From Heteronotia binoei (taxonomy: Eukaryota), in assembly GCF_032191835.1 (NCBI RefSeq), contig NC_083223.1:252464001-252528000 (forward strand): a stretch of 64,000 nt of DNA, given 5' to 3'. The translations under genes were made by a program, and so were the position numbers. The notes beneath the pieces were generated by a model. The model was given only the letters and a program-made list of their open reading frames with translations. It searched no databases and was not told the origin of the DNA. This document shows, piece after piece, positions 5,805 through 53,672 of the stretch (position 1 is its first letter; the number at the start of each line of letters is the position of its first letter).

Positions 5805-7040
5805 TGTGCAGCGTTGGAACACAGTCACAGAACATATTCTTTCTCTTTCCCCCTCCCTCTCTCGCTCCGTCCACCTGCTAATTTACAGTACCACCATGCA
5901 TCCGATGAAGTAGGGTCCTGTGCCCCCCCCACCACCATGGAGGGGGAGCAAGACATCTGATAGGGGATGCCAGCCTCCAGGTGTGACCCTGGGATCCCCC
6001 CAAAATTACAGCTTATCTCCAGACTACAAAGATCCTGGAGAAACAGAAGGTTTGGAGAGTGGATTCTGTGGCATTGTACTCCACTGAGATCCCTGTCCTC
6101 CCCAAGCTCCATCTCCAAATCTCCAGGAGTTTCCCAACCTGGATCTGGCACTGTGCCGGCCCTGCCACTAGGCAATTGTCGAGGGCACCTGCCATCTGAG
6201 ATTGCCAAATTGGATGTTCAGGTGTGACCTGGTATGTTATCAGGGAAAGGGCAGGGACAGAAGTTAGCCTTGCCTAGGGTGCCAGACATTCTAGGGCCTG
6301 CCCTGATCTCTCAACTCCCCTCCATGCCAAGGGGAACCTAGCAGAGAGTCACTACCTATAGCACAAATCACAAACATGTATAACATTTATTCTAGAATGA
6401 ACACAAAAATGAATTTTAAAACATGATGTCTGAATATCAGACTGCATAAAATTTGCAAACAAAATATATTGAGGCCAAGGTGACTGACCTGAAGAAGCAG
6501 AGGCAGTCAGTTAGGCACTTGGGGAAGACTCTCGGGGGGGCGTACTAGATGAGCCCTGCTCTGAACATGCATGAGGGTCGAGAGCGTGAGGGTCGAGAGG
6601 AAACAGAGCACCGTGCTAAGGATAAGGGGAATGTGCCCTCAGAAGGGACCTCCTCTTCAGTTGCTGATTTGATCCTTAGGCAAATAGACAGCTGGGTGGC
6701 AAAACCACGTACTAACCATATGGTGACTTGCCTGCCTGGTGCGAAGGTAGTGGACATTACGTGTGTAGTGGACATTACGTGTGTAGTAGATAGGCTGATA
6801 GACAGTGCTGGGGAGGAGCCAGTGGCTGTGGTGCATGTTGGCACCAACGATGTGGGGAAATGCAGTCGTGAGGTCCTGGAGGAAAAATTTAGGCTGCTAG
6901 GCAGGAGATTTAAGGCCAGGACCTCCAAGGTAGCCTTCTCAGAAGTGCTGCCTGTTCCACGTGCAGGGCAGGAGAGACAGGCACAAATTAGAAGTCTCAA
7001 TGTGTGGATGAGACGATGGTGTAAGGAGGAAGGGTTTAAG

Positions 7041-7125
7041 AACATAAGAACATAAGAGAAGCCATGTTGGATCAGGCCAACGGCCCATCAAGTCCAACAC
7101 TCTGTGTCACACAGTGGCAAAAAAA
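7041..7125 (-). mobile_element. Short antisense CR1 3'-tail insertion inside CR1 ORF1
   Basis: Reverse complement of the CR1 3' end, flanked by TTTAAG at 7035..7040 and 7126..7131. Removing it restores GFKFVRHWDAFW. Confidence 0.85.
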
Positions 7126-10100
7126 TTTAAGTTTGTTAGGCACTGGGATGCTTTCTGGAACAAGCGGGAGCTGTACAAGAGAGACAGTCTCCACTTGTCC
7201 TCAGATGGAACCAGGCTGCTGGTGCTTAAAATAAAAAAGGTGACAGAGCAGTCTCTGGTTTGGGAGGACTCATCTCAAAGAGATGAAGGGTTAGCTGTTA
7301 CTTTTCTACCGGGTAATGGATCAGAGTTGTCCACTGAGATGGTGACAAACAGTATGGACTGTCTGCCAAAGTCTCGAGGCAGCAGGAGGAAGGTGGCAGG
7401 CCTAGCTTGCCTGGGAAATTATAGATGTTTGTATGCAAATGCAAGAAGTGTTCGAAGTAAAATTGGTGAGTTGGAATGTTTAGTGTTGGGAGAAAACATA
7501 GACATTGTGGGAATTTCAGAAACTTGGTGGAATGAGGAGAATCAGTGGGACGATGATTCCTGGATATAAGTTATATTGGAAGGATAGGGAGGGAAGGGTT
7601 GGAGGTGGGGTGGCTCTGTATGTCAGAGAGGGTATGCAGTCCAGCAAGACTGAGGTAAGAGAATTAGATTCCCTTCTAGAAATGCTTTGGGAAATTGAAA
7701 TAGAGGACCCAAAAAGAAATTTAACTATGGGAGTTTATCGCCCACCAAATCAAAAGATAGAGGACGATTATAATATGATGGAAGGATTAAAGATAGCGGC
7801 TAAATGTAAAAACTGTGTCGTAATAGGTGATTTTAACTACCCGCAGATTGTTTGGGTCAATATGTGTTCTGGTTGAGAGAAAGAGATTGAGTTTCTTGAT
7901 GCTCTCAGTGACTGTGCTATGGAGCAGATGGTCTCAGAACCTACCAGGGGTGGGGTGATTCTGGATTTGGTCCTAAGTAATGCCCAAGACTTGGTGAGAG
8001 ATGTAAAAGTGATTGCAGCGCTTGGGAGCAGTGACCATAACATTATTGATTTCACCGTTTGTATAAATAGAGAGTTGCCCCAAAAGACCGGCACAACCAC
8101 GTTTAACTTTAAAAAGGGTAAATTCTCTGAGATGAGGCATGTGAAGAGGAAACTGAAAGGAAAGGTAAATACAGTCAAAACCCTTGGGGAAGCTTGGAGG
8201 CTATTTAAAACTACAATCCTAGAAGCTCAGCTAAAATATATACCACAAGTTAGGAAAGGCACAAACAGGTATAAGAAAAGGCCTGCATGGTTAACAAAAA
8301 AAGTAATGGAAGCTGTAAAAGGTAAGAAGGACTCCTTTAAGGGGTGGAAAGCTAGTCCAAGTGAGATTAATAAAAGGGAACACAGGCTATGGCAAATCAA
8401 ATAAGACTGTGATCAGGCAGGCAAAAAGGGACTATGAGGAGTATATCGCAAAAAACATAAAGACCAACGATAAAAATTTCTTCAAATATATTAGAAGCAG
8501 GGAGGCAGTGGGCCCTTGGATGACCAAGGGGTAAAAGGATTACTGAAGGAGGATAGGGAAATGGCTGAGAAGCTGAATGCATTTTTTGCCTGTCTTTACT
8601 GTGGAAGACGAGAAGTGTTTGCGCGCTCCAGAACCACTAATTTTGGAAGGGGTGTTGAAAGACCTGAGTCAGATTGAGGTGACAAGAGAGGAGATCCTAC
8701 AATTGATAGATGAATTAAAAACTAATAAGTCACCAGGTCCGGAGGGCATACATCCAAGAGTTCCGAAAGAACTCAAAGTTGAACTTGTGGATCTCCTGAC
8801 AAAAATATGTAATCTTTCATTGAAATCTGCCTCCGTTCTTGAGGACTGGAAGGTAGCAAATGTCACCCCCATCTTTAAAAAGGGTTCCAGAGGAGATCCG
8901 GGAAATTACAGGCCAGTCAGTCTGACTTCAATACCGGGAAAGTTGGTAGAAAGCATTATCAAGGACAGAATGAGTAGGCACATTGATGAACACAAGTTAT
9001 TGAGGAAGATTCAGCATGGGTTCTGTAAGGGAAGATCTTGCCTCACTAACCTGTTTCATTTCTTTGAGGGGGTGAACAAACATGTGGACCCAATAAATGT
9101 TGTTTACCTTGACTTCCAGAAAGCTTTTGATAAAGTTCCTCATCAAAGGCTCCTTAGAAAGCTCAAGAGTCATGGAGTAAAAGGACAGGTCCTCTTGTGG
9201 ATCAAAAACTGGCTAATTAATAGGAAGCAGAGAGTGAGTATAAATGGGCAGTCTTCGCAGTGGAGGACGGTAAGTAGTGGGGTGCCGCAGGGCTCAGTAC
9301 TGGGTCCCATGCTCTTTAACTTGTTCATAAATGATTTGGAGTTGAGAGTAAGCAGTGAAGTGGCTAAGTTTGCAGATGACACTAAATTGTTCAGAGTGGT
9401 AAGAACCAGAGAGGATTGTGAGGCACTCCAAAGGGATCTGTTGAGGCTGGTTGAGTGGGTGTCAATGTGGCAGATGAGGTTCAATGTGGCCAAGTGCAAA
9501 GTAATGCACATTGGGGCCAAAAATCCCATCTACATATACAAGTTGATGGGGTGTGAACTGGCAGAGACTGACCAAGAGAGAGCTCTTGGGGTTGTTGTAG
9601 ATAACTCACTGAAAATGTCAAGACAGTGTGCGATTGCAATAAAAAAGGCCAACGCCATGTTGGGAATTATTAGGAAGGGAATTGAAAACAAATCAGCCAG
9701 TATCATAATGCCCCTGTATAAATCGATGGTGCGGTTTCATTTGGAATACTGTGTGCAATTCTGGTCACCGCACCTCAAAAAGGATATTATAGCATTGGAA
9801 AAAGTCCAGAAGAGGGCAACTAGAATGATTAAAGGGTTGGAACACTTTCTCTATGGAGAAAGGTTGAAACGCTTGGGGCTCTTTAGCTTGGAGAAATGTC
9901 GACTGCGGGATGGCATGATAGAAGTTTTCAAGATAATGCATGGGATGGAGAAAGTAGAGAAATAAGTACTTTTCTCTCTTTCTCACAATACAAGAAAGAA
10001 GTACTTTTCTCCCTTTCTCAAAATACAAGAACTCGTGGGCATTCGATGAAATTGCTGAGCAGTCAGGTTAAAACAGATAAAAGGAAGTACTTCTTCACCC

Positions 10101-13443: not shown

Positions 13444-14685
13444 AATAGAGCAAAATAAACCAACATCAGTTTTGCACAGTAATATAACATTTATTTGCTT
13501 CATTTCTAGTCCATCTTTCTCACTGACACTTAAGGCAAACTACGATTTAAGAACAGGTATAACAGATACAGCCAACCCAGAATTAAAGAACCCCATGCTA
13601 CAAACACAGTGTAATGTAGACAATAACCCCGGAGTTATAGGATTGGATTGGAGATCAATGCAGTGAAACATTAGATACAATGGATGATTGCAAACATTAG
13701 AAAACAATTCAATAAATACAACTTATTATTATTATTAATAATAATAATAATAATAATATATGCAACAAAGACTGCCTTATGTGACACTGGCATCAACGAC
13801 AACCTTATTCACCTTATAAAAATGCCCTTTTGAACTATTCTGTTTTGTGCATTCTGTGGAACGATAGGAGTGTGGAACCCCCCTGATCTCATCAGACAGG
13901 CCATTCCACCAGGTGAAAGCCACTACAGAAAATGCAGGGTAGGGGCAGCTACTAATCTTATCCATTTGTAGTGGGGACTTCAAAAGGCTTTGCTCAGATG
14001 AGCAGCTCTGGAGAATCACTCTGCAAACATTTAAAATCAGAACAATCCTGTGAGGTAGGTTAAGTTGAGAGATAATGACTGGTTCAAGGCCATCCAAGGA
14101 GTTTAATGTCTGTGTGAGGGATCTGAACCCAGATCTGCCTGATTTTGCACTGCATTGTAAACAATTAAGGTAAGGGGAAAGGAAAATTGGCACTTCAATT
14201 AGGACCAGGCCAGCCAATAGAAGCCCTGTGGAAATTGCACTTCCACTGAGAATGTGACACTGCACAGGATCTCAGAAAAAATATATTCATATTTAATAGG
14301 GATGCTGGGCTCCAAGTGGAGCCTGGGGATCTCCTGGAATTACAGTTCATCTCCAGACTACAGAGATTAGTTCCCCTGGAGAAAATACTTTGGAGGGTGG
14401 ACTTTATGTCATTGTACTCCACTGAGGTCCTTGTCCTATGCAAGCTCCATCTCCAAATTTCCAGGAGCTTCCCAACCCGGATCTGGCAAACCTACCTCCC
14501 ACCCTCTCCTGGATGCTGGGGGGGGGGAGTTACTTGATAACCCTATTTAAAACAGTTATAGAATACTTGTCTGAGAAATAATGGCTTGGATCACACTGTA
14601 AACTTCCACTAACAAAAGGTGGATTCATAGTTTCCTCCCTCTCACAGAAGCCCTCCAATTCACTCGTCATGCTAATCCCCACCAC

Positions 14686-14893
14686 CAAGGCCGGATTAAC
14701 AAATAGGCCGAGTAGGCACCAGCCTATGGGCCCCCACACCTCTAGGGGCCCTGGGCCAGTTAGCCTCTCTCTGCCTCTCCACCACAGATTTGTCAAAGGG
14801 GCTTTCGAGAAGGTGCCTGCAGGAGATAATTTGTGAGAGAAGCCCTGAGATTTTGACTGCCCAGGGACCTCCACAGGGTTTAATCCAGCACTG
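14686..14893. mobile_element. hAT MITE
   Basis: TIRs CAAGGCCGGATTAA / TTAATCCAGCACTG; perfect TSD CCCACCAC. Confidence 0.8.
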
Positions 14894-14945
14894 CCCACCA
14901 CCAAGATTAACATTTTGGGGAGAAGGTATGGAGAGTTGGATGGGG

Positions 14946-15151
14946 TAATGCTCCCTGTAAGATATGTAGTCTTGTGGCAAAAATTGTACTTTGTGAGCTA
15001 CTGGCATTAAAATAGTGAGAGAGCACTTTAGCTATTGCATAAATTAGTTTGCTCTGGAGCCATCCTTCCTGAGCAAAGACAAAAATGTGTGAGCCAGAGG
15101 CTAAAAACACTGTGAGCTAGCTCACACTAACTCAGCTTAGAGGGAACACTG
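14946..15151. mobile_element. hAT MITE (CAGTGTTCCCTCTAAG family), degraded
   Basis: Ends in CTTAGAGGGAACACTG; reverse-orientation homolog of the 21383..21594 copy. Confidence 0.7.
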
Positions 15152-15442
15152 GGTGAGGCGAGGAAGCTCAGTTCAGTTGATAGAAATGCCTCCTTGTTAG
15201 AGGAGGTTTACCATAGGGCTTATATCAGCGTCCATAGTGGACTCTGTTGCCATTTTTCTAAGCAGACAGGCAGAAAGCTGGCTTTGAGGCATGTTCTGTA
15301 GCTTGTAGCACCTGAGAAGGCTGTGTTAAACAAGCCTCTGAGCATTAGCAGCATGCAAATTCAAACGTTTATTTTCCCCAGCTTCCAATTCAATTTGCTG
15401 CAATTTGTGGTATGGTGAGGAGGTCCTTTTACCACACATCAC

Positions 15443-15561
15443 CAGGGCTTTTTTTAGTAGAAAAAGCCCAACAGGAACTCATTTGCATATTAGGCCACAC
15501 ACCCTGACACCAAGCCAGCTGGAACTGCGTTCCTGTGTGTTCCTGCTCAAAAAAAGCCCTG
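15443..15561. mobile_element. hAT MITE (CAGGGCTTTTTT family) overlapping the TLR5-like stop codon
   Basis: TIRs CAGGGCTTTTTTT / AAAAAAAGCCCTG; 8-bp TSD CACATCAC / CACATTAC (7 of 8 match). Confidence 0.88.
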
Positions 15562-17492
15562 CACATTACAATTGTTGTGGAGGAACCAGGACAAGGAGAC
15601 CTGTGTGAAAGATGGAGCAGGAAGAAGACAAGGGATCCCTGTTGCCACAGATCTTTTCAGTGCCATGCTATTGCTCTGCAGCCACGTCTGCAAGTTGGCA
15701 AGGCCACAGTGACAAAACAAGGTCAACTCCTGCAGATCCAAAGTCTGCAGTAAAATCAGCGGCTGGAATATGGATGGTGAGAGGGTCATCATAGGGTTCC
15801 CACGGAGGCTGAGGGTGCGCAAAGACTGCAGGTCAAGGAATACTTCCTCTGGAAGTAAGGACAGGAGGTTCTCAGAGAGGTCCAGAGTCTGCAGAGACAC
15901 CAACCCCTGAAAAAGATCCTTAGGCAAGGCCTTGAGGCTGCTAGAGCTGAGATTCAGGACCATCAGCCTCTCTAAATGATGGAAGATGCCCACACATTTT
16001 CCTGCTTTCCAGATACCTGCCAGGTTGTTATGGGAAAGATCCAGTTCTCTGAGATATCTGGGGCCTTCTCGGATCCTGAAGCATCTCGCCAAGTGGTTGT
16101 TTGAGAGATTAAGAAAAAGCAAAGAGGGAATCTTCTCTAGCTGCTCCCAGAGCTGCCCCAGGTCACTCAGACGGTTGGAGGAGAGGTCAAGGTGTGTAAG
16201 GTTCTGACTAAGATGCTCAATGCCCCAGGTGTCCCCGATCCTGTTCTGCCCCAGCATCAGACGCTGCAGAGATGGGAGTTTGCCCTTTGGTACCTGTGAG
16301 AGAGCATTGTCCTGTAAGTCAAGGATTTGCAAGTAATTCAGCCCCACAAGAGCATCATGTTGAACAATTCCAATGTGGTTGGACTTCAGGTTGAGATTCT
16401 GAAGGGGTGATGACCTCAGACTTTTGAGTGCTTTTGTGTACAGCTCCCCAAGAATGTTGTTGGAGAGATCAAGAACTTGCAATTGATTCAGCTTGACGAA
16501 GGCTCCATCATGAATCTCGGTAATCTTATTGGACCTCAAGAACAGGATGTGGAGATCTGAGAAAGCTGAGAAGACAGAGGGGACTAGTTCATTCAGGAAA
16601 CTGTGGGACAGGTCAAGGGAGAAGGTACCACTGTCATGTAGCCCAGAAAAGGTCCTAGCTGAAATGTCCTTCACATTACGGAAACCAAATGAGCTTCCAA
16701 TTGCCCCTGAGTATTGCATCTTGAGGTTCTGGATATGTGTGCCAGTTAAGCTTGTGAAAAACTGTTCAACTTGCATTGCATTCCATGGATTGGAAGAGAT
16801 GTCCAGGGTCCCCAGTGTGATGTTGTGGAAAGGGTTGGTGCAGGTGTGGTGGTAGAGCAAACGGTTAGAAGACAGGTCAAGCAAGGCAAGATGGTGGCCT
16901 TTGAGGTTCTGTAGGTCATCCCCACAAATCCTCTCAATTCTGTTGAGTTTCAGCTGAAGGAAGCTCAGCTTTCCAAGCTGTTGAAAGGTTGAATCAGGCC
17001 TCAGTCTCTGGATGTGATTTCCAGAAAGATCCAGTCTCTTCAGGGACACCAAATCCTGGAAGTAACTATTTTCCAAAACTTTATCATCAAAGCCATTAAA
17101 ATCCAAGAGTAACACTTCAAGTTTGGTCAGGCCTGCAAAAGCAGCAGGGTGCAGCGTTACATTCCTGTTGCCTCCAAGGTCCAGAAATGTGATACCAGCC
17201 ACGTTCTGAAAGGCCCTCTCTCCCACAAAGAGTGATCCTCCCAACTGCTTCCCAAGGGACAACATCCGCAGGGAATCCATTTGGGGCCAAGTAGAATTTA
17301 AGATGGTGGAGAACAGGTTAAAATTCAGCAGGAGGACCTCTATGGAGGGGTCAACTTTGGGAACTGTCTTGTGGCTTTGAGCTTGGCAATTGGCTGCTAG
17401 CCAAAAATTCATCATGGTATGATGGCAGTGGCGTGGGACATCAGCAGTGTAACCCAAGACAGCCAGTGAAAGGATGGCCATACAAAAGAGGA
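15547..17492 (-). CDS. TLR5: Toll-like receptor 5-like, soluble form (LRR ectodomain + LRR-CT, no TM/TIR); main coding exon
   Basis: Uninterrupted 644-codon ORF (17481..15547) with about 20 LxxLxLxxN repeats. TLR5-type motifs: FLDLGGN, ENSYFQDLVSLKRLDLSGN, IGSSFGFRNVKD, LDLSHSFL. Four-Cys LRR-CT (CHC..C..C) is followed directly by a stop. Acceptor tttaatttacAG precedes 17492; AATAAA (plus TTTATT 15368..15373) follows. Confidence 0.88.
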
Positions 17493-18865
17493 CTGTAAAT
17501 TAAAAAGAAGGTTATTTATTCATTTGTCATTAATTATCTAGGTACACTAGTCCTAGAAGCTACACTTCTCAGAATTCCCCTAGATCTATTTGTGAAATGC
17601 TGGAAGGTAGGAAGTTCTCTTATTCAGTTTGAGACAGATGATCTATTGGCCTGTGACCAGCTTGGTTGCTGTGGCTCTTGGCCGTAACATTTGCAGGCCT
17701 GTGATCTGTCATGCTGGTTTTTTTGTCACTATGAAGTATTGTGGAAAGGAGGCGCCACTGAACGGCCATTGCCCACGATTAACTTTTTTTCTGAGCAAAC
17801 CATGAAATTAACTGTCAGCTAGTGAGAGCTGAAGGGAAGTGGAACTCCACCAGGTCTCTAGAGAAAGCAGAAATAAAGAAGAACAAACAAATAAGTGAAG
17901 CTACTCTTGCCAAGAGGTTGAACAGCAACACTTTTTAGGACAGGAATTTGGCAGTTCCAGTACACTGCTAGACCTGAAACCCTTCCACCGGGACTCTGTT
18001 AATATGAGCCAGTCCCTTGCCTTGCCTCAGCCTGGACACAGCAGCCAAGATAATGATAAAGAGAAACTAGGAGAGCTCCAGATCAACTCTTCCTCCAGCT
18101 GTTGTCCCGCTCCAAGTGTGGCTCCTACAGGCAGCCTCAAAAGGGAGGTTTAAATCAGGGGTAATGCTTATGTTCCGAACACTTATTTATTTACTTTATT
18201 TATATCCTGCCTCTGACTCCAATGGAGACCCAAAGCATCTGACATCTTGCTTCTCTCCTCCATTTCATTCTCACAACAAACCTGTAAGGTAGGTTAAGCT
18301 ATTGCTGCCATTCATCACAAGACACGCCCCCCCCCCTCAGTAGAAATAGCTGCCTTTGTTACAATTGGCCTTGAAGACTCTTTCATTCGCATTTCCTCAA
18401 CCTCAAGGGGTGGCCAATTATTTTTCCTGGCAGGGCTCCTGTGCCTTTAGCAGCGATATGACAGTCAGATATTAAATAGTTGAGACTTTCAAAGCAATGT
18501 GTTTCTGAGCCCCAGGGATTATTTTAGTTGCAGATGCTACAGTCCAAACCTGGAACTTTATGCGTGCAAAGTGTGATTGGACTCACAGTGACTACCAACT
18601 GACCAGTAAAAACTCAGCTCTTCTCCTTTGAATAGTAACCTGATCTTCAGAAATCAGTAAGTTAAAACTTGTCAAGGCACAGAGATAAGCGCAAGCACCT
18701 ATTTACAGTTTACAAAGTGTACTTCTCTTAAAGCTTAGAAATAAGAGCTGGAAACAAACCAGAGTTCTTATCTTCAACCGAATTATAGGCTATCCGTTCC
18801 CTACCACAAATCCTTTCCTGTCTCCAGGCTGGTGGCCTCAGCTCCAATGATCGTTCATTACTCAC

Positions 18866-18923
18866 CTCTTTGAGCCCCACAAAACAGGCCTCCGTCATGA
18901 AACCTCAGCATTGTGGTACCCAT
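18866..18923 (-). CDS. TLR5: Candidate first coding exon of the TLR5-like gene (signal peptide n-region)
   Basis: ATG at 18923 (or in-frame ATG 18911) reads MGTTMLRFHDGGLFCGAQR and ends at a GAG|GTGAGT donor in phase 1. This matches the phase-1 acceptor at 17492 and gives ...QRVLFCMAILSLAVLGYTA-DV. Inferred, no transcript evidence. Confidence 0.55.
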
Positions 18924-19019
18924 GCAAAGGAGATGTCTCTCTCTTTTCAGGCTCCAGCAGTCATTGCCCCATATAAACCCCACTGGAGTGAGGTGTTCCG
19001 CTTCTCAGGACACTAGGCT

Positions 19020-26259: not shown

Positions 26260-29200
26260 CTATCCACGCTCACAAATGACCTCGATCACACTCTGTTCCA
26301 TGGGTACAGGGTCCAGACAGCGGTGAGCTGTGCTGCCTACAATCTCGTCCAGCAAGAAATGCACCAGGTTCTCATCAGAAACAAAGCGCCACAGGTAAAG
26401 TTGCAGGTAGTAACAGTCTACTTGGATCTGCTGCAGGCCGAAGCGACCAAAAGTGCGCAAACGGACACACTCTAAAAACGTCTTCAGGCTGATCTTGATG
26501 ATGCCAGTCAGCACAGAGACCTGGATGAAAGCCGACAGGCAGAGGTGAAATGTACAAGCTGATTTGTGAAACTTCCAACATTTCCTGTGGCACCTTAAAT
26601 ACTTAGTTTTATTGTGGTGGAGACTTTTATGGACTAAAGCCAGTTCATAAATTGCATGAATTGTCTCTTCAGTCAACAGCTAACATACACATACATGGCT
26701 ACAGAGGAAAAAAGACACACGATACAAGAGGTGTATTTCTATAAAGCTTGAGTCCATTCAAGGTAAGCACCCACAGTGACTATTCATAACAGTGACAATT
26801 TGTTAGTTGAGTGGTCCTCATCTGATTGCAAACCCACCCAGAGCTGCATTTTCCACCACTTTTTGGAACAAGGTTGCCAATTCTGGGTCGGGAAATTCCT
26901 AGAGACCTGGGGATGGAGACCTGGGAGGGCAGGGCTTAAGGAGTGGAGGGGACTTAATGCGGATATGATGGCATGGAGTCAACCTCTAAAGCTCCCAATT
27001 TCTGCAGAGGAACTGATCTCTGTCATCGGGAGATCAGCTGTAATTCCAGGAGAACTTCACCTGGAGGTTAGCAACCTTGTTTTGGAAGGATCTGCACATG
27101 GAGAGACAATAAAGGTTCCACACCTCCTACCTCTCATTGCAGAGAGGAGGAGGAGGAGCAGCAGGATGGCAAGGCCAGGTCACTCAGCACTGGAGAAGGC
27201 TTCTCTGTAACACAGGCGGGTCCAGAGACTCTGGCTGCTCCCCTGGCTGTCACATGACATTCTGGCTGCTCCCCTGGCTGTCACATGACATTGTGACATT
27301 CTGCTGTGTCCTTGCAGCTTATGGGGTCCCATGCGCTTCCTGAAGTCAAACATGGTTACTGAGTCCGGAAAGGTTGAACACCACTGCCCAGGGCTTTTTT
27401 TTGTAGCAGGAACTCCTTTGCATATTAAGCCACACACCCCTGATGTAGCTAATCCTCCTGGAGCTTACAGCAGGCCCTGCGCTAAGAGCCCTGTCAGCTC
27501 TTGGAGGATTGGCTACATTGGGGTGTGTGGCCTAATATGCAAAGGAGTTCCTGCTACAAAAAAAGGCCTGCCATTGCCTAAGTCAACTATGAGAACAATC
27601 CTAAGAAGCCTTTTCAGAATCCTACTCAAGTGTTCAATGGTGATTACTTTTAAATACATTAACGGGTTTTTATGATGTTAAATTTAAGTTTTATTGTTAA
27701 ATTTAAAGTTTTTACACTTATTATTGTATTGTATAAGATGTTGTTAGCCGCCCTGAGCCTGCCTTGGCGGGGAGGGCGGGATACAAATAAAATTTCACCT
27801 TACTGTAGATTTGAAACAAATATTTTAAGGACACTCCAACATCTATTGGACAGAAGGCTGCCCCGCCACTGAAGGGGAAAACAGACACTTGCTTGGGAGT
27901 GCTGCTTCAGCACCCAATCACCTTTGTTTCAGATTTTGGAGGGAAACACAGCAGCAGGTGAGTTCTGCCTCATGGAGGGAGCAGTGAGAGCTCAGGTCTG
28001 GCTCAGGAGAAGAGCAGAGAGAATAAAGGGTAGTTCTGCTTGGTAGTGCAACAAAATTATTTCCAGGAAAGCATCCTTAGAATTGCACTCTGCATCTGCC
28101 AACTGACAATGCAATGTTTGCATCTGATGAAGTGTACCCATGAAAAGTGATGCTACAATGAATCTGCTAGTCTTTCAGTCACTACATAGTTCATCCCCAC
28201 TCTGATATGGAAGCACATGGGTGACTTTGGGCCAATCACACTCCCTCTCAGTCTAGCCAGTTCCCACGGGAGATAAAGGAGGGAGTAGATTTTAAGGACA
28301 CTCCAACATCTATTGGCTTCAGGCAGGACTGGCCCTGCTCCTTCCTCCCTTAACAGATAACTCTTTATGCCCCTGCAGAGAAGCCCCATCTGGGTGTGTT
28401 AATATTCCTGGACTGTACAAACTAAGAATAAAATGAGCTCAAGGCAGATGTGCCCTGGCAGCACCCTCACCTTGTTGAACTCCACAGGGCTGAAGATATC
28501 GATGCGCTCGGAGAACAGCTTCTGGATATTACTCAGCAGGTTGGTATCCATGGGGGCACTTGGGGACAGGAACAGAAAGAATGAATTTATCTAACAGTCA
28601 TTCACTGAGTTGCTTAGAGAGAGCAAAGGATCATCTCCAGGTGACCAAGCAAAGAGACTCTTGGTAAAGGCAAGGCATGTGGACAATTGTATTTAAATAC
28701 CTCTGGTGTCTACTCTTACACAGTGTTCCAGAATTAATTTAGAACATGTAAAATGGCTGGAGATGAAGGTAGATCTAGGGAGAAAGACCCAATAGCTGTA
28801 GGCCCAATCTAAGTTGATGAAGTGGGGACTCCCCTCCTGGCATCCAACACATACAAGGAAGGTCAGAGAACTCCCACCTGCCCTGCTCACCTGGGCGTGT
28901 AGCTGGGCGCATAGCGACTCTGCTGCCGGGAGCTGCTGTACACTGAAAAGGTTCTTTTGCTGGAGTCGCTGCTCTGTGCTTTACGCACCCCTTCTTCATA
29001 CAGAAGCCCAACCTGAGATGGGAGGCAACATTTGGGAGATGGGAGAAGGGAGTCAATAAAGTGGAGGCAGACTAGCATCTGACTGCATCAGGTCTCTGAA
29101 ACAAGCCCTGCTGGGTCTTGATGAGGCTTCCTGAAAGCATAGCTTCCTGATCTCAGAGACTGGATGTGGCTACTTAGTGGCAAGTGCACAAACTTTGCAC

Positions 29201-45479: not shown

Positions 45480-53672
<8,193 letters not shown>

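Follow-up and report, generated by a model that had tools for sequence, protein, structure and literature searches.

The gecko Heteronotia binoei carries an intact and expressed gene for a TIR-less TLR5-type ectodomain, very likely the orthologue of TLR5L

In the stretch of Heteronotia binoei DNA analysed here (64 kb in total, hereafter the window), a two-exon gene on the minus strand is intact, under purifying selection, transcribed and spliced, and from our point of view it is very likely the H. binoei orthologue of TLR5L. The gene is already known, as it belongs to a published family and has been annotated by NCBI, misleadingly, as "toll-like receptor 5" (model P0001, 667 aa, 100% identical to the product of the window gene). 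The initial annotation overstated the novelty of the locus, since TLR5L is published for amphibians and reptiles and annotated in dozens of squamates. The gene model consists of the following features:

18971 to 18977, minus strand: TATA-like motif TTTATAT, ~50 nt upstream of the start codon, invariant in three geckos
18923 to 15547, minus strand: CDS span of the gene, two exons, 667-aa product, identical to NCBI model P0001
18866 to 18923, minus strand: exon 1, coding portion, 19 codons and 1 nt, spliced as in P0001
17493 to 18865, minus strand: intron 1, GT..AG, 1373 nt
15547 to 17492, minus strand: exon 2, encoding the remainder of the leader, LRRNT, LRRs and LRR-CT, and ending with the stop TGA (15549-15547)
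15568 to 15714, minus strand: LRR-CT cap with four cysteines (C613, C615, C641, C661)

Most of the protein is encoded by exon 2, within which the ORF list of the window contains a stop-free frame of 644 aa (15547 to 17481, minus strand). The product has the ectodomain of the TLR5 subfamily, composed of LRRNT, ~22 LRRs and LRR-CT, and is nearer to TLR5 than to other TLRs, as its best match among solved structures is the human TLR5 ectodomain (E 7.7e-83, residues 39-638), with TLR3 at ~1e-33. A Pfam search returned LRR families only and no TIR, and the AlphaFold model of the protein has a pLDDT of 90. Hydropathy reveals one hydrophobic segment (residues 20-38, Kyte-Doolittle 2.01), and this N-terminal leader is a putative signal peptide. 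When translation starts in exon 1, 19 hydrophilic residues precede it. Exon 1 and its donor AG/GTGAGT are kept in Gekko and Paroedura; the start ATG at 18923 occurs in H. binoei only and a second ATG at 18911 (MLRF...) is common to three geckos. The TTTATAT motif upstream is a candidate core promoter.

Neither the transmembrane helix nor the cytoplasmic TIR domain of canonical membrane TLR5 (TLR5M) was found in the protein or in the 64-kb window, where a tblastn search with the corresponding part of the H. binoei membrane TLR5 yielded noise only (E >= 2.6). An intact TLR5-family ectodomain with a four-cysteine LRR-CT and no TM/TIR, followed by nothing TM/TIR-coding up to TM7SF2, had been read from the sequence by the initial annotation, and the ORF, the Pfam search, the structure match, the hydropathy and the window-wide search all bear this out. 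A GPI anchor was considered and rejected, as a C-terminal hydrophobic tail is absent. Lacking both membrane anchor and TIR, TLR5L can therefore not signal on its own, and recruitment of MyD88 is impossible.

Within the phylogeny, the gene falls into the TLR5 family and there into the squamate TLR5L clade (support 100/100), the whole TLR5L clade being supported by 90/100 with a branch length of 0.36. We found dozens of TIR-less orthologues of 617-718 aa, two of which are named 'Toll-like receptor 5L', and forms of ~650 aa occur across squamates, turtles and amphibians. Liu et al. 2019 (PMC6946030) described the TLR5L of amphibians and reptiles as soluble, and TLR5L was also described in Quasipaa spinosa (PMC12179096). 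The H. binoei gene shares with these published forms the length of ~650 aa, the TLR5-type ectodomain without TM/TIR, the clade and a similar dN/dS, and differs from them in lineage details only, namely a MITE-derived C-terminus, an additional upstream ATG and a long 3' UTR.

The genomic neighbourhood is consistent with this assignment. The order VPS51 - TLR5L - TM7SF2 is found in H. binoei and in Gekko, and a position between these two neighbours, which is an unpublished TLR5L criterion of the present analysis, thus holds in geckos. The first exons of TM7SF2 lie in the window as follows:

2041 to 1874, minus strand: first of the two TM7SF2 exons
865 to 770, minus strand: second of the two TM7SF2 exons

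A literature search combining TLR5 with TM7SF2/VPS51 gave no relevant results. The separate membrane TLR5 that had been expected in the same assembly does exist (P0080), 56 Mb away on the same chromosome and with 37% identity to TLR5L. Membrane TLR5, as known from human TLR5, zebrafish TLR5b (PDB 3V47/5GY2) and P0080, has the LRR horseshoe in common with TLR5L, whereas gecko TLR5L is without transmembrane helix or TIR domain and occupies its own VPS51/TM7SF2 locus.

Since teleost TLR5S also lacks TM and TIR and ends after LRR-CT, the question arises whether the gecko gene is its orthologue and thus the counterpart of a flagellin-induced acute-phase liver protein, an equivalence that the initial annotation had implied. 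The tree, however, places teleost TLR5S within teleost TLR5M and the gecko gene in the TLR5L clade, and forcing TLR5S and TLR5L together costs 168 log-likelihood units (p-AU 9e-32). We hence reject orthology with TLR5S, the probability of which is practically negligible, in agreement with the conclusion of Liu et al. 2019 (PMC6946030). TLR5S, with the same domain architecture, arose independently inside the teleost TLR5M lineage. Rainbow trout TLR5S binds flagellin, is induced in the liver and amplifies TLR5M signalling (Tsujita 2004; Tsukada 2005; both as cited in PMC6043800). Among soluble forms of TLR5, it alone has had its function tested, and as such it provides a working model of mechanism, although this function is not simply transferable to TLR5L.

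Expression of the gene is evident from exon-specific RNA in two studies, with a depth on exon 2 of 146 (run X1) and 13.6 (run X4). Over intron 1 the RNA depth is 0 (17537-18127), the X1 contig stops at 17494, at the acceptor, and the depth is again 0 in the downstream flank beyond the 3' UTR (13991-14187). These RNA contigs cover exon 2 and the 3' UTR, exon 1 being outside their coverage. In two raw-read transcriptome runs (X7, X8), the exon had almost no reads, and the reads present mapped to repeats only. The 3' end has the following features:

15368 to 15373, minus strand: AATAAA, 174 nt after the stop codon, kept in Gekko
14286 to 15546, minus strand: 3' UTR, ~1.2 kb by RNA contigs 14286-14364, 14356-15060 and 15145-15475 at exon-like depth
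14297 to 14292, minus strand: ATTAAA, candidate distal poly(A) signal

The initial annotation had correctly noted the AATAAA about 170 nt past the stop but had placed the end of the transcript near 15350, and the RNA runs on to ~14290. Past the AATAAA the depth stays at 126 versus 146 (X1) and at 9.7 versus 13.6 (X4), so that this motif is at most a minor poly(A) site. The same RNA bears on whether some transcripts encode a membrane form, through read-through splicing into TM7SF2 or into an unseen TM exon. This idea draws on an entry from Lerista edwardsae (P0015, 1028 aa) in which a TLR5L ectodomain is fused to an ERG4_ERG24 protein; that entry, however, is an unreviewed 'hypothetical protein', and the NCBI models of more than 20 species end at the LRR-CT cap. 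In the RNA contigs and reads there are neither indels or joints within exon 2 nor joints leaving it, and coverage continues unbroken across the stop codon into the 3' UTR. We therefore regard a membrane form as very unlikely.

The stop codon itself lies in a transposon, which is delimited by the following features:

15443 to 15561, minus strand: MITE of 119 nt with perfect 13-nt terminal inverted repeats (15443-15455 and 15549-15561)
15435 to 15442, minus strand: distal copy of the 8-nt target-site duplication, GTGATGTG
15562 to 15569, minus strand: proximal copy of the 8-nt target-site duplication, GTAATGTG

The core of this element occurs in six copies in the window, with zero expected by chance, and the insertion is absent from Gekko japonicus and from two other gecko contigs. 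Inserted after the last native codon and ahead of the native stop, it provides the residues QGFF as well as the stop codon now in use, so that the H. binoei protein ends with ...NCNVQGFF instead of ...NCDV. Whereas members of the clade stop 0-5 residues past the last LRR-CT cysteine, the H. binoei protein ends 6 residues past it because of the MITE. This lineage-specific insertion replaced the native stop and added four residues, leaving the LRR-CT cap untouched.

With a transposon on the stop codon and with TM and TIR missing, one could imagine that the gene is a decaying, truncated TLR5 pseudogene that is stop-free merely by chance. The MITE, however, contributes no more than the four residues past the cap, and the point of truncation is common to all orthologues from bichir to snakes. 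In six gecko genomes, moreover, the frames are open over 646-650 codons with pairwise dN/dS values of 0.23-0.35, far from the frameshifts or the ratio near 1 expected of decay, and a value of 0.236 was published for reptile TLR5L (Liu et al. 2019, PMC6946030). On the basis of dN/dS, the conserved end point and expression at good depth, we reject a pseudogene as exceedingly improbable.

How old TLR5L is can be approached through the short TLR5 forms of lungfish, bichir and sturgeon, all of which fall within the TLR5L clade. In Polypterus (bichir), the TM7SF2 neighbour, a 420-aa ERG4_ERG24 gene, has the short TLR5 4.6 kb upstream of it; for the sturgeon form, there were no neighbouring gene calls within 10 kb. 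The hypothesis that TLR5L arose within tetrapods is rejected (p = 8e-5). Taken together with the placement of the three fishes and the adjacency in bichir, this dates TLR5L to the bony-vertebrate ancestor or earlier. A gene duplication later than the shark split is not rejected (p-AU 0.19), and an origin in 2R is therefore only a possibility. On human 1q41-42, TLR5 is close to LBR, which is the paralogue of TM7SF2, an arrangement that would mirror the pair of TLR5L and TM7SF2. A search within PMC9857387 found no mention of LBR. In teleosts, birds, crocodilians and mammals, no TLR5L copies were seen in this analysis. With moderate confidence, we propose that TLR5L is an ancient paralogue, devoid of TM and TIR, that stood beside TM7SF2 in the ancestor of ray-finned and lobe-finned vertebrates, that it is maybe a 2R ohnologue, and that its LRR9 pocket has been invariant for >400 million years. 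This older origin contradicts both the published hypothesis that TLR5L arose around amphibians (PMC6946030) and the published statement that non-teleosts and tetrapods possess a single TLR5 (PMC9857387).

The pocket in question belongs to the LRR9 insertion loop of the TLR5 subfamily, which sequence comparison finds in the gecko protein as well:

16666 to 16701, minus strand: LRR9 loop IGSSFGFRNVKD, residues 284-295 of P0001, equivalent to the flagellin arginine pocket in zebrafish TLR5b

The resemblance of this loop to that of zebrafish, pointed out before, is real for most of the pocket: residues matching zebrafish G270, S271, S272, F273, G274 and N277 are kept in the gecko, and the motif G-x-x-F-G-F-x-N is common to membrane TLR5 and gecko TLR5L. 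It does not extend to Y267 and N268, which are G and A in the gecko. Across 25 proteins of the TLR5L clade, G285, F288, F290 and N292 are invariant, and of the ten segments most conserved in the clade, the loop is the only one that does not belong to the LRR consensus.

Two ligand assignments can be imagined on this basis, namely that (i) TLR5L is secreted and uses its conserved LRR9 pocket to bind flagellin; or (ii) it is secreted but has a non-flagellin ligand, or acts as partner or chaperone of another receptor, with the LRR9 loop serving that contact. The second is possible but rather unlikely in our judgement. It would fit a literature in which the ligand of TLR5L is stated as unknown (Liu et al. 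2019, PMC6946030), the two pocket-wall residues that are unlike zebrafish TLR5b, and the split of TLR5L and TLR5M in the bony-vertebrate ancestor or earlier, which left ample time for a change of ligand. However, the core residues of the arginine pocket (G, S, S, F, G, N) are retained, four of the pocket positions being invariant across the clade, positions 275 and 303 carry the residues of human TLR5, a flagellin binder, and the N-terminal half retains the shape of TLR5 in the predicted model (TM 0.86-0.87 and rmsd 2.2-2.5 A on zebrafish TLR5 crystals). A literature search for functional studies of any TLR5L returned nothing relevant. As judged from sequence and predicted structure, we lean towards the first assignment, that of a secreted flagellin-binding protein, and consider it reasonably probable. 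Secreted TLR5L would then bind flagellin through the LRR9 pocket and modulate membrane TLR5 signalling, acting as an amplifier, as is the case for trout TLR5S, or as a decoy.

Overall, what the present analysis adds for the window is mostly housekeeping, in that the gene is a real, functional-looking and expressed member of a published family. Given the strict conservation of the LRR9 pocket, the flagellin hypothesis amounts to a cheap and well-defined experiment. If the proposed age and function are true, a secreted sensor of the flagellin type would have been part of the ancestral toolkit of bony vertebrates.

The TLR5L gene of H. binoei contains an ORF of 644 codons (17481-15547, minus strand) whose frame stays open back to a splice acceptor at 17494-17493. 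The 667-aa NCBI model of the gene (P0001, named "toll-like receptor 5"), which is 100% identical in a protein search, owes its 23 additional residues to a first exon (18923-18866) spliced to 17492, and the resulting CDS, spanning 3377 nt, coincides with the range proposed in the initial annotation. The ORF, the TLR5-type ectodomain, the LRR-CT ending and the AATAAA were all found where they had been placed from the sequence. Among solved structures, the human TLR5 ectodomain was the top match to the ORF protein (E 7.7e-83, residues 39-638), followed by zebrafish TLR5b, with TLR3 reaching only ~1e-33. The AlphaFold model of TLR5L (pLDDT 90, pTM 0.86) superposes with its N-terminal half on zebrafish TLR5 crystals (TM 0.86-0.87, 2.2-2.5 A).

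The 5' features of the gene are as follows.

18923-18866, minus strand: coding part of exon 1, joined to 17492 in P0001
18977-18971, minus strand: TATA-like TTTATAT, invariant in three geckos (H. binoei, Gekko japonicus and Paroedura picta)

Exon 1 is kept in G. japonicus and P. picta with an invariant donor (AG|GTGAGT). An ATG at 18911 (MLRF...) is common to the three geckos, whereas that at 18923 was found in H. binoei only. Since Paroedura has Ile in place of the exon 2 Met of other geckos, the exon 1 start is required at least in this species. The DNA directly 5' of exon 1 (18971-19000, minus strand), TATA-like motif included, is likewise conserved across the three geckos.

The proposed absence of a membrane anchor and signalling domain was borne out. 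A Pfam search of the ORF protein returned LRR families only and no TIR domain, and the TM and TIR tail of gecko TLR5M, searched against the entire 64 kb by tblastn, gave chance matches only. While the membrane TLR5 of H. binoei (P0080) has a clear TM helix at residues 644-662 (hydropathy 2.6), the sole hydrophobic stretch of TLR5L lies at residues 20-38 (2.01); six residues separate its fourth LRR-CT cysteine from the protein end. P0080 itself, an 858-aa protein with a TIR domain, provides the separate membrane TLR5 locus in the same assembly (196.5 Mb, against 252.5 Mb for TLR5L on the same chromosome).

The gene is under constraint and expressed. Frames of 646-650 codons are open in six gecko genomes, with pairwise dN/dS of 0.23-0.35 at dS of 0.18-0.38 (Nei-Gojobori); for reptile TLR5L a dN/dS of 0.236 has been reported (Liu et al., 2019; PMC6946030). 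In the gecko Sphaerodactylus townsendi (P0007), ~20 residues around 300-320 are unrelated to those of other geckos at unchanged length, which looks like a compensated frameshift pair or an assembly error. Four RNA libraries contain 39-56% of the sequence words from this 4-kb stretch. In library X1, a single contig covers 15534-17494 at depth 146, and in X4, from a second study, contigs cover exon 2 at depth ~13, in both cases without indels or joints in exon 2; exon 1 lies outside the contig coverage. As depth is 0 at 17537-18127 in the intron and at 13991-14187 in the flank, the signal represents RNA and not contaminating DNA.

Two features of the 3' region, the transcript end and an inserted element, deserve description.

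15443-15561, minus strand: MITE of 119 nt with perfect 13-nt terminal inverted repeats
43-65, 123-145, 27409-27431, 27529-27551 and 49358-49380: other copies of the MITE core in the window
14286-15546, minus strand: 3' UTR under RNA contigs, ~1.2 kb, crossing two dispersed repeats
14297-14292, minus strand: ATTAAA near the end of RNA coverage

The AATAAA at 15373-15368, 174 nt past the stop, is conserved, yet RNA contigs traverse it at nearly equal depth (126-160 in X1, 9.7-12.5 in X4) and extend to 14286-14356. Together with the ATTAAA, this places the main 3' end ~1.2 kb past the stop, contig ends being inexact, and not near 15350 as initially annotated.

Compared with G. japonicus, H. binoei carries 127 extra nt exactly at the ORF end. 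The 119-nt element is a MITE, located exactly on the native stop codon and flanked by an 8-nt target duplication (GTAATGTG and GTGATGTG), the length of which suggests a hAT type. The window holds six copies of its core, and the insertion is absent from three other geckos (G. japonicus and two further gecko contigs). The native ending ...NCDV-stop has thereby become ...NCNVQGFF-stop, so that the element supplies the last four residues as well as the present stop, leaving the LRR-CT cap unaffected. Since RNA contigs of X1 and X4 contain the junction, the inserted form is the transcribed form.

In zebrafish TLR5b, Y267, N268, G270, S271, S272, H275, N277, F278 and K303 of the LRR9 loop form a cavity for a conserved flagellin arginine (PMC5247705). 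The initially noted likeness of the gecko loop holds in that the residues matching G270, S271, S272 and N277 are kept, whereas positions 267 and 268 differ; at 275 and 303, gecko TLR5L has Phe, as does human TLR5. Among 25 TLR5L-clade proteins G285, F288, F290 and N292 are invariant, and within the ten most conserved 11-residue windows the loop is the sole segment outside the LRR consensus. This supports a conserved TLR5-type ligand pocket, although the ligand of TLR5L is stated as unknown by Liu et al. (2019; PMC6946030). Lacking both TM and TIR, TLR5L would act only outside the cell. It may bind flagellin and pass it on to TLR5M, by analogy with trout TLR5S, for which such a transfer was shown according to citations in PMC6043800 and PMC2691675; alternatively, TLR5L might sequester flagellin.

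By the definition of Liu et al. (2019; PMC6946030), TLR5L is a short, soluble form of TLR5 that occurs in amphibians and reptiles and is phylogenetically far from fish TLR5S; a 2025 frog paper reports it in amphibians, turtles and anole (PMC12179096). As P0001 is also annotated, both the kind of gene and this particular gene were known, and the latter is an ordinary orthologue of the family. The new points are minor: a MITE located on its stop codon, the length of its 3' UTR, and an age of TLR5L that predates tetrapods, with conserved TM7SF2 linkage. Our protein search retrieved TIR-less relatives of 617-718 aa, those of geckos at 84-88% identity and the others from further lizards, snakes, turtles, an amphisbaenian, tuatara (partial sequence), caecilians, salamanders, frogs, a lungfish, a bichir, sturgeons and paddlefish. 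UniProt names two of them "Toll-like receptor 5L", and NCBI uses "toll-like receptor 5" for both TLR5L and TLR5M, which hides the paralogue. Two further models look like annotation artefacts, namely a 1028-aa fusion of TLR5L to TM7SF2 in Lerista edwardsae (P0015) and a 648-aa TLR5L-type protein of Rhinatrema bivittatum labelled 'VPS51 homolog isoform X4' (P0033).

In a maximum-likelihood tree of 50 ectodomains (629 alignment columns), the H. binoei gene falls within the TLR5 family, in one clade with all tetrapod TLR5L and the ~650-aa TIR-less forms of lungfish, bichir, sturgeon and paddlefish (P0045, P0062-P0065; support 90/100, branch length 0.36), separate from a second clade (94/91) that unites the TLR5M of sharks, sauropsids and teleosts. 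The TLR5S of teleosts branches from within their TLR5M, and a joint group of TLR5S and TLR5L was rejected (AU test, p = 9e-32); the gene is thus not the teleost TLR5S to which it had been likened. A duplication within tetrapods, with all tetrapod TLR5 and TLR5L constrained together, was also rejected (p = 8e-5), whereas one after the cartilaginous-fish split was not (p = 0.19). Synteny supports this age independently: H. binoei and Gekko share the order VPS51 - TLR5L - TM7SF2, with all three genes on the same strand, and in Polypterus 4.6 kb separate the short TLR5 gene from a 420-aa ERG4_ERG24 (TM7SF2-type) gene downstream of it. The TLR5L-TM7SF2 intergenic region of H. binoei includes a stretch (6001-10000) in which GC skew (0.23-0.24) and AT skew (0.10-0.17) are strongly positive relative to the rest of the window. 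Among annotated proteins matching above TLR5M, no short forms of birds, crocodilians, mammals, teleosts, gar or coelacanth appeared, which does not by itself prove loss. Lampreys have ~720-aa TIR-less TLR5-like proteins (P0099, P0105) that group with lamprey TLR5M, with a long-branch warning at that join.

Taken together, tree, AU tests and synteny make TLR5L at least as old as the bony-vertebrate ancestor. This is older than the amphibian origin put forward in PMC6946030, and it also conflicts with the single TLR5 reported for non-teleost fishes, amphibians and reptiles (PMC9857387). Given the lamprey proteins, soluble TLR5 forms may have at least three separate origins: one in lampreys, one in teleosts (TLR5S) and that of TLR5L.
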